Source: Trichoplax adhaerens (Eukaryota; Animalia; Placozoa). Taken from it: 64,000 bases of DNA. Location: NCBI RefSeq assembly GCF_000150275.1, contig NW_002060976.1, positions 67,626 to 131,625 of the forward strand, in the 5' to 3' direction. The notes beneath the pieces are model-generated. The model searched no databases, was not told the origin of the DNA, and saw only the letters and a program-made list of their open reading frames with translations. A program made the position numbers and the translations under genes. This document shows, piece by piece, positions 30,187 through 39,040 of this stretch; within the stretch, counting starts at the first letter, position 1, and each line of letters begins with the position of its first letter.

Positions 30187-33100
30187 AGCAGTTCAATGCA
30201 ATAGAACCTTTAAAACATAATCGGTTTCTTAAGTTGATATAGTCAAACTTGACCTGTCAAACTTAGACTGCAACCATGACTGGAATCCTTCTATGCTACA
30301 TCAAACGATAAAAACCGTTTAAGATCATCTTAGATATACACATAGCAGTGCATGTATATACGGTATGTAATATCCTTTGATAGGGTAGCCATATCCAATT
30401 TTCCATGTTATGACAAGTTTGTAAAATTTGATGTAGATCCATTATGCACTGGCATTATTTTGTTAGTTTGATATCAGTGTTAAGCATTAATTGAAAATAT
30501 AATAGTAGATTAGTCAATCTTGTAATATAATTGTGGGTAATGCTCGCCATTTTACCCTTTGTTAGAAGGAAACTTAACGAATTTTCTGCTCTATTACAGT
30601 ATGTGACTGTGTTGTAGGCAATAGTCGTACTTGTTTCATTGATATTGTTGAATAAAATTGACTAGCGTATTATTGGACACTTTATTTAGTAATGTTTGCT
30701 AATTGATGTGAGTAAACCTTAATGAATCAAGTCAAGGTGTTTTCATCAGCATTCACGATGGCAAAATGGCCATTTGTTGAGGACTGCTATTCGTACTATG
30801 CCTGATAATTTGATGAGCATTTTGAAGTTTTACTCTTCAATTTTAACATTCTATGAAATATCATTATCATGGATCAGTTTACACTTGCTCGAAGTTATAG
30901 ATTTAATTTAAAAATGCGCTCAAATGATTTGGAATCATGCTATCCTAGTACAGTACATGAATTGAAGCTAGTAATTCCAGTTACCGCTTTCAAATATCGC
31001 TATAGTTGCATCATATTCAATAAAATGCAATACTGAACTAACAACATGATTTATATGTGTCTGTATGCATTTCAATGATACGATCAAATCGGATATTGAC
31101 ATCAGTCATGATTACTTCTTGTCAATACAATTGTCTGTTTGGATCAAGGTTCAAGTTTGAACCAGGCAGGCATGATACAGACCTTTCGGCAAGTTAAGAC
31201 TTGTTATGCGCGCTGCAATACTATAACGTTATGAAATCTTTTCCTTGATAGAAGGATGGGATTTTTATTGACATAAATAACTTGCTAAGTATTAAAGAAT
31301 TGGCTCATGGTGATCTCTCCATTTCTATAACTATCATAGTACTTTCTTGATTCACTAGTTTCGATAACCCGATAGCCAACTTTGCATCTACACTATTTTG
31401 TAAGTATAAAGTTGTGAATGGTCATATAATTATTTACCTTAAAAGTATTCAATTAATATTCGTCAATAGCCATGAATTTCTCCATACGGATTGATTGTGT
31501 ACTTATCTAAAGGAAATGAAAATCAACTCTCATGCCTACTGTACTCTATCTCTCTTCAATTCCATTTATTCGCAGCTTCAAATGAAATAGCCAATATGAA
31601 GAAGAATTCCTTGACGACATAGTAACTGCCCACTTCCACTTTAGTATGGATCAAAGTAGATTATCCTATTGGCAATGACTGCACCATTTTCAATGCCTAT
31701 GAGTTACATCGCCATAGCATTTAGAGTCAGAAGGGAAATCACAACTATAAAAATTTTTCCCTTTCCACCTTTCACTCTTGGCCGAAAAGAAACTTGCAAG
31801 CTTAGGCGTAAAGTTTATTAGCAGATATCACATAAACTAGGGCTTAATCCCTTATGTTTATAACATTTGAGTAAGGAATATAATCGCTTCTTGTAGATAG
31901 AGTAAAAACTTTGCTTTATAAATCTATACAGTATATAGACAGCTTGATTCTAGGCTTACTTAAAATGTCATTTATATTGTGAATAAGCCGTTACTATTGT
32001 ATCAAAGTATAAAACACGAAATTTATTACTACAATCAAATGTACTCGTGGACATAGCTTTTTACCATCTAATAACAGTTCAATTTTCTACTTTATAGAAT
32101 ATGAAACTATACTTCCGTATTCAAAAAGAACACTTTCAGTTTAAAATAGGAATAAATGTGTCTTTAGATAAACATGTTCACCTTTAAAACTTTAGGATTC
32201 AATCTAAACTTTAGATATTATAAAAATTGACGGTGTGTTACAGAGTATTTCTTTTAGATGAATACCCGAAATGTATCAAAAAAGACCTACGAAAGTATTG
32301 ATGAGATTTCGTTTTAATAGCATTGGATTTATTGGGTAGAATGGTATCTATCATGTAGTACTAGTAAAGAAAACAGTATGATTTGGGTTAACAGATATTC
32401 TACGACCTATATTCTTCATGGAGACGTGGAAAATTCGATTTTCTGGATTTGTAAATTAAAATTGAAAATGTCTAAGCTGTACAGTAGACAAAGAACGTTC
32501 ATAGAATATGAGAATGTGAAAGTTTTCCGAAATAATTACATGGATATAAATAAATATTTTTTAATCTAATTAGTTCTAATCATCAAATTAGACTATTGTT
32601 TACATTTTGTTATTGCATTTGAAACAATCATTTTTGCTCATGTTATATAGTATAGAAGTAATTGTCCGTTAATAGAACTTGAAAACGATCCATATTAAGT
32701 CTTATTTATATTTTCCTAATGTGAATGACTAACCTATAGAATAATGAAGCCAGGTAAACAAAGAATGAATTCTACAGATTTATGTGTATTATTTTCAAGA
32801 TTGTTAATTAATTGATAATACTTCTCTAATTGCGTAATTTGAAGGTTTAGTACCAGTAGCGCATGCGGCGAACTGTTAGAAACTTATTGTCTAAGCAGTG
32901 ACAGATAGCTCTTGAATTGTTTTCAATTTTATCCAATCGCTATTTACTACTCAGTATTATGAACTACTACATGTTTTATTATGACTCCTAAGGTAGAAAA
33001 TCGTAGAGAAATCATATCTGCGATTACAGTTGTACTTGAATCTTGTTTCATACAAATCGTCGTGAAATTGATTACTCTCTAAAGATAATCTAATTCAATC

Positions 33101-34331
33101 ATCTAGTTTACGTGGCTTAACAGCTTTTGACCGGTGTTCAGAGAAAATCAAAATTAAGCCTTCTCCGATAATTAGATACGCTAATAAAGGTCGTTTGGAA
33201 GGCGGAATTTTGTCTAGATTTCAGTTGCTTCAGCATTTTAAGGAATTTTTGACTATGCTAAAGCAACTGAAATTCAATTCTACATATTCAAAATTTAAGT
33301 TGATTTGGCTGCAATAATGGCCGTCAAAAAGCCATTATGGCACTTTCTTTGGCCATTAGCGTACGCTGTACCCGGTACTAGTTTTAAACTGAACATTTTC
33401 TACTGGGTTTGAGTATGAAAGTTTAACTCTACTTTGGGTAGCCATACTCGTACAGTATTCTTCGAACTATACTGGAGTAACAAGTTGCCAGCCTATAGGG
33501 ACTATAGTACTAGAAAGAAAGATTCGAAATGGAAATCTGCAGATCTATCATTTTTCTGGTCGTTCTATACTACAACTTTACTGCTGAGAGCGTATACACT
33601 ATACTCTCACTATACAGTAGAATTAAATCAATCAAAGCAGCTTGTGTGGATGATAATGATGGACGGTGACACTCACTGTGTATCGTTTCAGATCTACGTT
33701 TCAGCACGGTTTCACTTGAAGTGGCCAGTCCGTTGAAACAGTAAAACTGATGCGGGTTTTCACTGTAATGACAGGATTTGTATGAGTTTGTGGAATGGGA
33801 CTGTAGAGGGAACGTTACCGTTGACAAGATTAGTATGAGATCTACCGTTACCACTGAAGAGATACACTATAACAAATGAAAAACGTTACGACAAAACCAT
33901 ACAGTACAATTTGACCACTTTACAGTATGTCGCGACTGGGCACAATGGGCAGAGAGCAAGCATTTCTCGGACGGATGTACAACGGATATGCCAGGCAACC
34001 TTCAAAAGGAATTGATTGCATCCACGTGGACCTTCACTTCGTTCGCCTTCTGCTGGTAGTTAATTGAGCTAATCGAACTCTGCGTTGCAAGTTGAACATG
34101 GATCCAGCATGGAGCAGATGAGAATTCTACTTAATCAAGTTAGAATGGTGATACACAATGGAAGGAAAGTCGCTTGATGTATTGAAGCAAGCTCAAGGTA
34201 AAATAGTTTTCAAGTTATGCACAGTAGATGAGTAGAGGTTCGCCTTGTAAGGAAGTTCGGATGACCGAGCGAGAATCTTATGAGGTGATCGGAAAATTCT
34301 GCTTAACACGATTAAACCATGCTAGAATAGT

Positions 34332-34419
34332 AGAATGTCATGATGATAGAGGTAGATTTAGACTAGAGTCTCTGATCAATAAATATGACGAGTCTACCCT
34401 TGGCTGTCTGAAACATTCT
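34332..34419 (+). ncRNA. Box C/D snoRNA, double guide U52(snR78)/U53-like, copy 1
   Basis: Terminal stem AGAATGT/ACATTCT; C ATGATGA 34340; D' CTGA 34372; C' ATGACGA 34385; D CTGA 34408. Guides AGACTAGAGTC (anti-28S GACUCUAGUCU) and CCCTTGGCTGT (anti-28S ACAGCCAAGGG). Confidence 0.92.
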
Positions 34420-34785
34420 TGACCTAATAGCTCCAAAGTCGGGTTTCGAGAGATTAGGTTGATTTGTCTAGGTAGTAGTGGCTGATCGACAATTTCAGTT
34501 TGATGCCATGTATTACGTTGAGTAAGAATGTTTGTAATAAGGGCGTTGCAATTTTATTTCTTTAATGTAGTGGCAGTGAAGATGGTCCTGGATGGGCGAT
34601 ACTGAAAGGAAGCGTCGGATAAATGGGAGCGAGAATTGGGTATTTTCCGGGATCAATTCTATTTCATGGACCAACCAATGGAATTGACCCATTTTCCGAT
34701 GGCGTGCTTGCCATGTTGTATGCGGTAAGTTACAACGGCGAAGAACATCGAGATGCAGCTCAAATTTGACACTAGCTTAGTGTAG

Positions 34786-34914
34786 GATCATTGATGACAC
34801 AAGATGACGATCTGAAATCATGTTACTTACTTTAGCACGATCGAAATTCTTTCGCTTGGCTAAAACGTAACTATGATTTGTTTTGATGGACATTCGAGGC
34901 ATTTGTCTGAGATC
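34786..34914 (+). ncRNA. SNORD15: Box C/D snoRNA U15-like, copy 1
   Basis: GATC/GATC stem; C TTGATGA 34791; D' CTGA 34812; long central hairpin; D CTGA 34907 preceded by CGAGGCATTTGT (anti-28S CAAAUGCCUCG), as in vertebrate U15. Confidence 0.9.
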
Positions 34915-35640
34915 ATCTTGCTACATTGATATAGATTATAAGTAACACCGGATAATTATCATATATATGAAATTAGTATACACAACATTTGATATAATAT
35001 ATAATTGGAAATGCACTGTACAATTTTCACGTCATTGCCGTGGTTTGCATCACCGACTGCAGTTCTTCTTTTACTAGTCCTAGCTCTTACAGTAGAATTA
35101 ACGATTATGATGTATTTTCCCTTTTAGCTTTCTTTGACGGCGTTGGAACTGAGAAAATGGAAATAAGATGTGATCCGCCGTTACCATGCAGAGGTCTATA
35201 CTCCTCATCCACCATTTGACTAGCATAATATGGCGTAAGTCTGAGATATTCTGTACACAGTGATTACGTGTATGAAAACGCCCTTTTCAGCCATAATTTA
35301 GCCACCATTCGTGTGTAATAGTGCTGCTGCAAACATTATGAATAACATTACAGGAAGTAGGTGTATCGCTTGGAATACTTTAGCCTTGACTGCGTTAATA
35401 TACACATTTATATCGTACCAGTTATGACTATATATTGTATCATGCAGTAATTATTTAGCTATCTGTAATACAAGGCGGTTAATATATACTTTTTAATGGC
35501 ATGATACCGCAGGGACTACCGTACTTAGTATTTTAACCAGGCAGTAGTGGGTATAGGACCTAGTCAGGGCGTCTGCTAAAGAAAACCTTAAAAACAAAAT
35601 ACGTTCTCCAAAACTGTATTCCATAATAGCAACGATACAA

Positions 35641-35729
35641 AGAATGCGATGATGATTAAGGTAGATTTAGACTAGAGTCTCTGATCTTCTACTATGACGA
35701 TTCTACCCTTGGCTGTCTGAATGCATTCT
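35641..35729 (+). ncRNA. Box C/D snoRNA, double guide U52(snR78)/U53-like, copy 2
   Basis: Stem AGAATGC/GCATTCT (compensatory change relative to copy 1); C 35649; D' 35681; C' 35694; D 35717. Both guides are identical to copy 1. Confidence 0.92.
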
Positions 35730-36185
35730 TAACGACACGGCCAGTCTGCAGTATGCACTACAGGACTGACAGTCTGTATTTGCTGCTACAGATCGCGATG
35801 TGGCTGTTCAACTTGCTATGTAGTTATGCAATTTATCCCTACAAATGTAGAATTAAAGATGAGTAACTGTAATGGTCTCGTCATATTAGCCACCTGCTGG
35901 ACTATACTACTACAATTAGCTGAGATCAGGACAGTAACCTCCAATCTTCAAAATTGTTAGTTAATTCATAATTTCCTTGAATGTTACATTTTGTAGGAAT
36001 CTTTGTTGCATTCCTTAAAACATGAATGGAAGGCTACAAAATGATATTCCAGAACATTGTTGAATTTTGTGGAATAACGATTGCGACGGTAATGGATAGA
36101 ACAGTCTTAAAACGTGTTCTCATTAAGTGAACGGTTAATTTCGATCAGATAAAACTGTGATAATTTCGTCTTTTAGCTTTGTTTG

Positions 36186-36318
36186 TGATCGTTGATGACA
36201 CAAGATGACGAGTCTGAAATCATGTTACTTACTTTAGCACGATCGAAATTCTTTCGCTTGAGCTAAATCGTAGCCATGATCTGGTTTGATGTACATTCGA
36301 GGCATTTGTCTGAGATCA
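36186..36318 (+). ncRNA. SNORD15: Box C/D snoRNA U15-like, copy 2
   Basis: TGATC/GATCA stem; C TTGATGA 36192; D' guide AGATGACGAG-T-CTGA (36214); central hairpin; D guide CGAGGCATTTG-T-CTGA (36310). Confidence 0.92.
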
Positions 36319-39040
36319 TATGTTGACGTTAATTAATTAAGGGTTGATCAGAAGTTTTGTACAGTCTGTAAAGAGACGACTAAAGATTCTCAATTAACTA
36401 CCGTAATTGTTATGATGATGTTTACAGTTTACAACTTTTGTCGCTTTGTATTAGGTTTATGGATATTAACTGAAACCATCTTCCGTAGCAACAATGGTGA
36501 TTGTCTGTCCACCACGTCAGGGTCTGTTCTTCCGATTGGCCACTGAATTGTTTTGCAAACATATAATGAACGAAACAGTCTGTAGTATAACAATGCGATT
36601 ATACCCTTGTAAATAAATTTATAGTAGGCAGAAAAACTTGGCTTCTGCTCTAAATTGTAGAAGTCTAGATCATCAGCTGTTGTGCTTTAGTTAAGGACTG
36701 ATTGCTGGCTATCGTAGCTATTAACGTATAAATATATTGGGTCTACTTTGACTTTGTTATTCTAATTTAATTTTAATTGCCTTACTGCTGTTTCAATGCA
36801 TCTTGCTAAACCACAAAGAAATATAATATCAACCATGTTGTATCGGTACGATAACTTCTGTTAAAATTCTTAGCAAAGACTTTTTATCGATGATTGGAGT
36901 TAATTTTTATCTCTTGAAAATACCATATGCAAATACTATTTCTTGTCGACGTGTTTTATCTAACTCATTATTTAATAAATTCAGTAATGAAAGTCTCCCG
37001 AAATGATTTACTTATTGATATGACGGTTAAGATATTTTCTTAAAATTTACGAATATTTATAGACATCCACTGCTTAATAGCAATTTTCTTAGTAATAATG
37101 GAGACTTTTAGACCTCACTATTTAGTTCTCCAATGAATGAATTACTCCTCAATCTAACATTTCAACGCTTTTGTACATTATCGCTCATAGTTTGGATGCT
37201 ATGCTTTCGTTGTCACCATATTTTTATTTTAATACATGACATATCATGCCAATACGTAATTTAATTCTCTATTTTAACTCGCATTGATCGTAGAGCTAGT
37301 GGAAGTGCTGCTTTATTACTCTAGATAATACAATACGCGTATTTCGTTTCCCTAGATGCAAACAACTGTAACATTACTGTATAATTCCAGGGTAAATCTT
37401 GATGCCAAAAGATACGGTTAAGATTGTCTTGTGATACTAGTACTGAACCTCCTCGATCCAATTATTTTTTACAGATTCATTTCCAAAATTTATATCAGCC
37501 CAGCTGAATGATCAAATTGATTAACTTTTGATACCGAGCATATTTTAAAATTGCGAAGTATTTGCCACAATAATTTCCTGAATTATTGCATCTAACTTTA
37601 TTACACACTGAAATATTAGAAATTACTTAATTCAAGTACGGTATTCATACTCATTTATAGATTTCACTAATATTACAATTATCGACTTTCATCGAGCGTG
37701 ATTGCAGAGTACAGTATGTAGACATTCCGTATTTAAAGCAGGATCAAAAAATTTATTGACTAATGCATTAAAATAAGACATGTTGAATAAATGTGAGAAC
37801 TGCCGTTGATAGGTAGTAATGGAAATTATATGACAATGTGAAGCAGTAATGAAGTGACGATAGATTATATTAATGCCTGCTTAATGATTAACTATGATTG
37901 GTTAATAGTTTGTTATATTGGAATATTGTTACGTAACCTTTATACTTTAGGCTTACATGAGTTAGTATGAGAGACTCAAAGATTTATATTGGAAAACCGC
38001 GCAGAGCCAATTTTGTATGAAATTTGAAAAGATAGATGCTAGTTAGAGATATCTTAAGGCAGTCGCCTGCCACATATTTTACTGCTTCTGTTGCATTTAG
38101 ATCTACTCGCGAACCTTTTAATTAATACATGCAATAAGTAAAACTATTACCCGAATCTATTAATTAAAGTTAATTTTGGAATAACAATAGTAGGTCTAAT
38201 AGTAGGGATTATTACAGTGATCAATCTACGAAATCGAATCTATGTATCTGATTTAAAAATTACTTCAGCGATATTCATAGTGATAAAATAGAGACAGCTG
38301 CTATTCCAGTTCATTGTGAACCAATACAGACAGCGATAGATATCACTTGCTGTTGCTAAGAGCTCTAGATATAGAGCAGCTGAATATTACGACATAGCAC
38401 GACGATAGCAGTTGTTGGTGAGTTCTTGTAGTCATAGATTAGGGAATAAATTTTAAATGTTAAAAAGTAACATTTTTTATAAATTTATTTTTAATAAAGA
38501 GATAAAACTGTAGATTTATAATTCATGTTGTAATCTTCTTTTAAATACAAATATCTTTTAATAGGATAATACAAAAAAGTATTGATGGTGCACCTTATTA
38601 AATCTAGGGGGTATTAATTTCCCTAGTACGATAGATAATACACCAGGTTTAGTTAATCGATCTACAGTTCATGAAATATACTGTAAGTTATTGAATGAAG
38701 AGAGACTTAGCTAGGTTTGATTTCTCAGTAGTTCAAAATTCCAATAAATAAAGAAAGTATAAGTTGTTGTTTGAAGAAATGAAAAATAAACAGTGATTAA
38801 CAAAATACTTATAAAAATTACCTACAACTAAGGTATTTATCTTCAGTTCCTACGTGCTAGCTAATTTGCCAACTAAGTACCAAAACTTTAATTACTCATT
38901 TTTAAATGAAATTATCATTAGATTAATTGGTAAATTTACACGGATGTGTACCTTCTCTAATTGGATTAGCCATAATTTATTTTTATTTTATTTTACAATT
39001 GCATGGAACAGCTCTTTGATGAGTTTAAAATTTAACTTAC

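Follow-up and report, generated by a model that had tools for sequence, protein, structure and literature searches.

A stretch of 64 kb from the genome of the placozoan Trichoplax adhaerens (the window, to which all position numbers refer) contains an interval of about 3.3 kb, 33343-36620, with four box C/D small nucleolar RNAs (snoRNAs) on the + strand in the order A-B-A-B (A1, B1, A2 and B2). A is a double-guide box C/D snoRNA of the snoZ157/SNORD52+SNORD53 type, and B is a homologue of SNORD15 (U15). The interval itself has no protein-coding capacity. Its best reading, and on the sequence a somewhat better than even one, is that of a non-coding, probably spliced snoRNA host gene, because it holds no open reading frame (ORF) beyond chance, no match to Pfam or to a homologue, and no promoters of the small nuclear RNA (snRNA) type. 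The window is AT-rich (G+C 30-41%), and outside a dispersed-repeat copy at 33233-33364 the interval is single-copy in the genome. The assembly covered by all genome-wide searches has 1414 contigs and 105,631,681 bases.

When the interval was scanned against Rfam with E-value reporting, exactly four matches were returned, all on the + strand. The four snoRNAs, each with its Rfam match, are as follows.

34332-34419, + strand: snoRNA A1; C box 34340-34346, D' box 34372-34375, C' box about 34386-34391, D box 34408-34411
34331-34420, + strand: Rfam match of A1 to snoZ157 (clan CL00063), 46.4 bits, E 1e-7
34786-34915, + strand: snoRNA B1; C box 34791-34797, D' box 34812-34815, D box 34907-34910
34786-34915, + strand: Rfam match of B1 to SNORD15, 31.6 bits, E 4e-4
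35641-35729, + strand: snoRNA A2; C box 35649-35655, D' box 35681-35684, D box 35717-35720
35640-35730, + strand: Rfam match of A2 to snoZ157 (clan CL00063), 53.9 bits, E 7e-10
36187-36318, + strand: snoRNA B2; C box 36192-36198, D' box 36214-36217, C' box about 36287, D box 36310-36313
36187-36318, + strand: Rfam match of B2 to SNORD15, 38.4 bits, E 9e-6

All four fall below the Rfam gathering scores (55 bits for RF00333, snoZ157; 75 bits for RF00067, SNORD15), and a scan of the window at gathering thresholds gives only one transfer RNA (tRNA). C, D', C' and D boxes and a terminal stem are present in all four; the B snoRNAs have TGATGA and CTGA boxes and a GATC stem of 4-5 base pairs (bp), and the A elements also match Tetrahymena TtnuCD15 (RF02291). 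A de novo scan for boxes, stem and a guide to ribosomal RNA (rRNA) over both strands of the 64 kb found these four as the only strong candidates, and the Rfam scan widened to 24-46 kb found nothing further. Genome-wide BLAST and the covariance models RF00067 and RF00333 returned only these two copies of each family.

We also looked for additional members of the cluster. Other CTGA sites in the interval had no convincing guide to rRNA, to the spacers or to U1, U2, U4 or U5, and a C/D candidate at 36413-36473 had neither a stem nor a target. Decayed additional copies of A or B were sought in 30-41 kb, where the best local alignments stayed within the range of shuffled sequence. A 45-nucleotide (nt) block ending in CTGA, at 35884-35930, recurs at one unrelated locus of another contig (L030, G000:C1411:2589644-2589698, minus strand) with unrelated flanks; the block has no rRNA target, and its copy at L030 has no C box.

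To assign targets, the guides were tested against the genome's own ribosomal DNA (rDNA), with the target taken as the fifth position upstream of the D or D' box. The D' guide of both A1 and A2 forms a perfect 14-bp duplex with 28S rRNA that points to U2526, and their D guide forms a perfect 11-bp duplex that points to C2470. The D guide of B1 and B2 likewise forms a perfect duplex of 11 bp, directed at A2386. Both guides are intact in B2, in which the D' guide pairs perfectly over 10 bp and points to G2393; in B1 a 1-nt deletion in this guide, relative to B2, shortens the perfect duplex to 9 bp, and U2394 instead of G2393 becomes the predicted target. The four target sites all fall within 141 nt of conserved 28S core. 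In human 28S rRNA, Am3785 and Gm3792 are the sites of SNORD15A/B, Cm3869 is that of SNORD53/92 and Um3925 is that of SNORD52 (PMC11550049). The offsets between A2386, G2393, C2470 and U2526 (0, +7, +84 and +140) are equal to those between the human sites Am3785, Gm3792, Cm3869 and Um3925, and the names SNORD15 and U52/53 are therefore right.

From these pairings, the D' guide of A would direct 2'-O-methylation of 28S U2526, whose human counterpart is served by SNORD52, and the D guide of A would direct methylation of C2470, whose human counterpart is served by SNORD53/92. In B, the D guide would target A2386 and the D' guide would target G2393. Since these are the sole copies of both families found in the genome, the four snoRNA genes probably supply all guidance for these methylations.

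Compared with SNORD15 (U15A/U15B, RF00067), B is also a long C/D snoRNA of about 130 nt, its D guide aims at the equivalent of Am3785 and its D' guide at the G located 7 nt downstream (the equivalent of Gm3792), and both B guide sequences match the Rfam consensus. On the other hand, the B copies, at 31-38 bits, fall short of the gathering score of 75, and the D' target of B1 is shifted by 1 nt. Human U15 lies in introns of RPS3, whereas U15 is not hosted by RPS3 here, because the genome holds no further copy. The yeast counterparts of SNORD15 are snR13 and snR75. A resembles snoZ157/R69/R10 (RF00333) and TtnuCD15 (RF02291) in that it carries both guides on one RNA, as in plants and ciliates, although with 46-54 bits it scores just below the gathering score of snoZ157. 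The guides of A aim at the equivalents of Um3925 and Cm3869, as do human SNORD52 and SNORD53/92, but human uses two snoRNAs, each with one of the guides and each in a host gene of its own.

A1 and A2 are 86.5% identical, with all differences outside boxes and guides, and B1 and B2 are 93.2% identical, with no difference in any box; three of the four guide pairs are unchanged between copies, the exception being the D' deletion in B1. The 7-bp terminal stem of A reads AGAATGT/ACATTCT in A1 and AGAATGC/GCATTCT in A2, a compensatory change. Apart from about 13 nt before B, direct repeats do not extend beyond the snoRNAs, and the flank pairs of the duplicate units align no better than shuffled sequence. 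Because the snoRNAs are conserved while their flanks no longer align, the tandem duplication of the A-B cassette must be old, and selection has kept both copies. The initial annotation had described four complete box C/D snoRNAs in A-B-A-B order on one strand, had named them U15 and U52/53, and had read them as a duplicated cassette with similarity largely confined to the snoRNAs. Each of these statements held up, and the Rfam scan that it had proposed returned SNORD15 and clan CL00063 (snoZ157), at the sub-gathering scores given above.

The interior of B downstream of D' (34811-34858 and 36213-36260) is identical at 48 of 48 nt and more conserved than the 3' half. Gene conversion or internal structure is a possible explanation of this identity; pairing of the 48-nt interior (34811-34858) with rRNA was no better than that of shuffled sequences.

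If the interval is a non-coding host gene, the four snoRNAs would lie one per intron of a spliced, polyadenylated RNA polymerase II transcript without coding capacity. The 3' end of this transcript would follow the AATAAA at 36612, and splicing, debranching and exonucleolytic trimming would free the snoRNAs from it, in the manner of hosts of the GAS5/UHG type. Signals in the sequence suggest that the snoRNAs share one transcript, that it is spliced and where its exons begin and end. GTAAGT donors are present at 34725 and 35235, and weaker donors at 34198 and 36089. The candidate elements are listed below, with the splice positions marked by a slash.

34571-34724, + strand: putative non-coding exon in the A1-B1 spacer; acceptor AATGTAG/, donor GCG/GTAAGT
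35128-35234, + strand: putative non-coding exon in the B1-A2 spacer; donor GGC/GTAAGT at 35235, alternative acceptors at 35083 and 35095
35851-36088, + strand: putative non-coding exon in the A2-B2 spacer; acceptor AATGTAG/ at 35850, alternative acceptor at 35997, donor ACG/GTAATG at 36089
34547-34570, + strand: block TGCAATTT-N9-AATGTAG, 127-150 nt downstream of A1; putative 3' splice-site region of the intron around A1
35827-35850, + strand: block TGCAATTT-N9-AATGTAG, 97-120 nt downstream of A2
36612-36617, + strand: AATAAA poly(A) signal, the first after B2 (294 nt downstream); candidate 3' end

The exon 34571-34724 is defined by the best acceptor-donor pair in the A1-B1 spacer, a pair whose score is matched by only 2% of length-matched random segments of the genome (p ~0.02). 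The pattern TGCAATTT-N9-AATGTAG has only two occurrences in the 64-kb window, one after each A copy. Only one other AATAAA lies on the + strand in 33189-36611, inside A1. We considered depletion of AATAAA as a mark of the transcription unit and rejected it, as it is not significant given the local composition and is not strand-specific. The sequence GTAGAATTAA has three + strand copies in the 64-kb window (33617, 35092 and 35847), all of them inside the interval, with 0.42 expected window-wide. Each copy follows an AG, and the copies could be repeated acceptor or exon-start motifs.

Several observations weigh against a spliced host gene. The exon 35128-35234 is not above random, since 29% of random segments score equally, and the exon 35851-36088 scores no better than random segments; with generic splice-site matrices, the summed score of the three spacers gives p ~0.12. 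The upstream neighbour of the cluster is an organic-anion-transporter-like gene with short introns, and the real introns of this gene have weak acceptors, so that sequence alone has little power to settle the exon structure. Finally, the proposed 5' end falls in a dispersed repeat, and no alternative start was established. In the initial annotation the locus was a dedicated long non-coding RNA of the SNHG type, with snoRNAs interleaved with GT/AG sites and a start resembling a 5' terminal oligopyrimidine (5'TOP) sequence near 33343. The snoRNAs are real, coding capacity is absent and the GT/AG sites are present, but as splice signals these sites are statistically weak (one of three exons, in one of three spacers, beats random segments), and the 5'TOP start is not supported.

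The octamer CTTTCTTT, on which the 5'TOP start rested, lies at 33345-33352 within the repeat copy.

33233-33364, unstranded: dispersed-repeat copy of a family of about 125 nt; contains CTTTCTTT at 33345-33352 and a palindrome at 33315-33337

BLAST found at least 12 other genomic copies of this repeat with 75-88% identity, including loci L020-L029. In an alignment of the copies, the consensus at the octamer CTTTCTTT reads CTTTCATT, and in the longer alignment context the family consensus is CACTTTCATTGGCCATTAG against CACTTTCTTTGGCCATTAG in the window. The octamer is thus a variant inside a repeat and provides no evidence of a TOP promoter. The palindrome TAATGGCCGTCAAAAAGCCATTA (33315-33337) was also considered as a promoter motif and rejected because it is part of the dispersed repeat; genome-wide, the paired motif is 1.7-fold over control, and the longer motif is not enriched. 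As a guess, the CACGTG box at 34022, together with the pyrimidine-rich run after it (34022-34055 in all), could be an alternative candidate start.

Some copies of the repeat family are longer, those outside the window are often trailed by simple repeats of the GTACAGTAC type, and copies occur in tandem on contig C391. Folding showed a strongly structured stretch at 33140-33450. A near-perfect hairpin at 33216-33282, with a stem of about 20 bp, arose when part of the repeat copy was duplicated locally in inverted orientation; the surrounding 276 nt have a z-score of -4.5 and give weak, sub-threshold Rfam matches to microRNA and H/ACA families.

Among the rival explanations, a polycistronic, non-intronic cluster would produce the four snoRNAs from an unspliced precursor cut by an endonuclease of the RNase III type and then trimmed, as in plants and yeast. 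The locus resembles the clusters of plants, yeast and protists in its same-strand arrangement, which for U15-type and Z157-type snoRNAs also occurs in four environmental contigs. Tight same-strand clusters of both families in environmental eukaryotes have spacers down to about 100 nt, and here the splice signals exceed chance in only one of the three spacers. However, the spacers in Trichoplax are several hundred nt long (366, 725 and 457 nt) and contain splice-like signals: one of them holds a strong acceptor-donor pair, and each A copy is followed by the conserved acceptor-like block. Moreover, animals overwhelmingly use intronic snoRNA biogenesis. We therefore regard an unspliced cluster as unlikely.

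A second possibility is that the snoRNAs reside in introns of an unrecognised coding gene, with very short or fast-evolving exons or with introns in its untranslated regions. About 11.5 kb around the cluster (30.2-41.7 kb) has no recognised gene, which leaves room for an unannotated one. The longest open frame in the interval on either strand, however, is 105 amino acids (aa) against a shuffle mean of 99 aa, so that no ORF is above chance length. None of the six interval ORFs of at least 50 aa has a Pfam match, and a word search for the 100-aa ORF, cited as the longest, found no homologue. The flanks, about 8 kb at 30.2-33.2 kb and 36.7-41.6 kb, contributed ten ORFs without a credible Pfam match. 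The single match (E 0.16) was far below the family cut-off and is also the only one among all 16 ORFs in and around the interval. When each candidate exon was examined singly, stop codons were found in all three frames, with 4-8 stops per frame in the exon 35851-36088. The segment with the best codon-usage score in the interval, a 48-codon ATG ORF at 34623-34766, might be taken as a piece of such a gene, but in a scan that discriminates weakly its score is only 8 bits and unremarkable, and read exon by exon the ORF would stop 12 codons into the next candidate exon. A hidden coding host is thus distinctly improbable. The interval had been called ORF-less and invisible to ORF-based annotation, and the coding test proposed with that claim, with the exons taken singly, agrees with it.

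To evaluate separate promoters, we compared the snoRNAs with the snRNA-type genes of the same genome. U1, U2, U4, U5 and U3 have one match each, and upstream of each of them is a proximal sequence element (PSE), CCATAATTGAAG, near -58 and a TATA box near -30. A clear PSE on snRNA genes was described for Trichoplax adhaerens by Hertel et al. 2009 (PMC2655684). Upstream of the four snoRNAs, snRNA-type PSE and TATA elements are absent, the best PSE score being 4.5 bits against 16-20 bits for U1, U2, U4 and U5. Independent snRNA-type promoters are therefore unlikely; the initial annotation had named independent promoters for the snoRNAs as a finding against its host gene. Separate transcription of each snoRNA from a promoter of its own is highly improbable: U3 is independently transcribed here with a divergent PSE, and weak promoters could be missed, but none of the four has a PSE or TATA element before it, and conservation between the duplicates covers the snoRNAs themselves but not the sequence before them.

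The non-coding host gene preferred here has several counterparts. Like vertebrate GAS5, the SNHG genes and Drosophila Uhg, the ORF-less locus has same-strand snoRNAs that are separated by candidate exons and lack promoters of their own, and a poly(A) signal lies downstream. Unlike those hosts, which carry a set of different snoRNAs, the locus carries a duplicated pair as its cargo; it has no sequence relationship to any named host gene, and its splicing is predicted from sequence signals.

In a metagenome scan, the double-guide layout was present in at least 120 environmental eukaryote contigs, and thus a single RNA with both the U52 and the U53 guide is widespread. In 4 of 120 environmental contigs (L060, L064, L089 and L100), a U15 D guide lies on the same strand within 0.1-1.2 kb of the double guide, and the order U15, SNORD24, Z157 is common to L060 and L100. 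In L064 the U15 guide falls within a TtnuCD10 match. Given the frequent clustering of snoRNAs, this co-occurrence may be a coincidence. It is conceivable, but in our judgement doubtful, that the U15-U52/53 linkage goes back to an ancient cluster of eukaryotes, kept in Placozoa and there built into a host gene, and that B1 and B2 have begun to divide their labour (G2393 versus U2394).

A second locus of the same genome is also ORF-poor. The genome's single SNORD18 (U18) match, at 52.8 bits and above the cut-off, lies on the minus strand in an ORF-poor stretch (L031, G000:C1414:11716855-11719928), with a second C/D-like element about 330 nt downstream of SNORD18. This locus is probably another non-coding host gene. 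It had been chosen as a coding host on which to calibrate the distance from snoRNA to splice site, and the calibration was dropped when the locus proved ORF-poor. Elsewhere in the window, a palindromic AAATGGCCATTT is found at 30764-30775, within the flank lacking recognised genes, and a tRNA gene with a long variable arm is located at 63135-63216 on the minus strand (56 bits).

A non-coding snoRNA host is a known gene type, of which this locus is most likely a further example. Among box C/D snoRNAs, the non-coding RNA annotation of Trichoplax lists only U3, U18, U36, U76 and U106 (Hertel et al. 2009, PMC2655684). Because the two families described here are missing from that list and nothing at the locus reaches the Rfam gathering thresholds, the placozoan repertoire gains two conserved snoRNA families from this locus, and four conserved 28S methylations are predicted. 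The single-RNA form of the U52/U53 guides found in plants and ciliates persists in an animal, and the human split of these guides is therefore derived; U15, for its part, is not tied to RPS3 in this lineage. While the concept of a snoRNA host gene itself is unchanged, the locus is useful for placozoan annotation, for the study of snoRNA evolution and for the dating of dedicated hosts.

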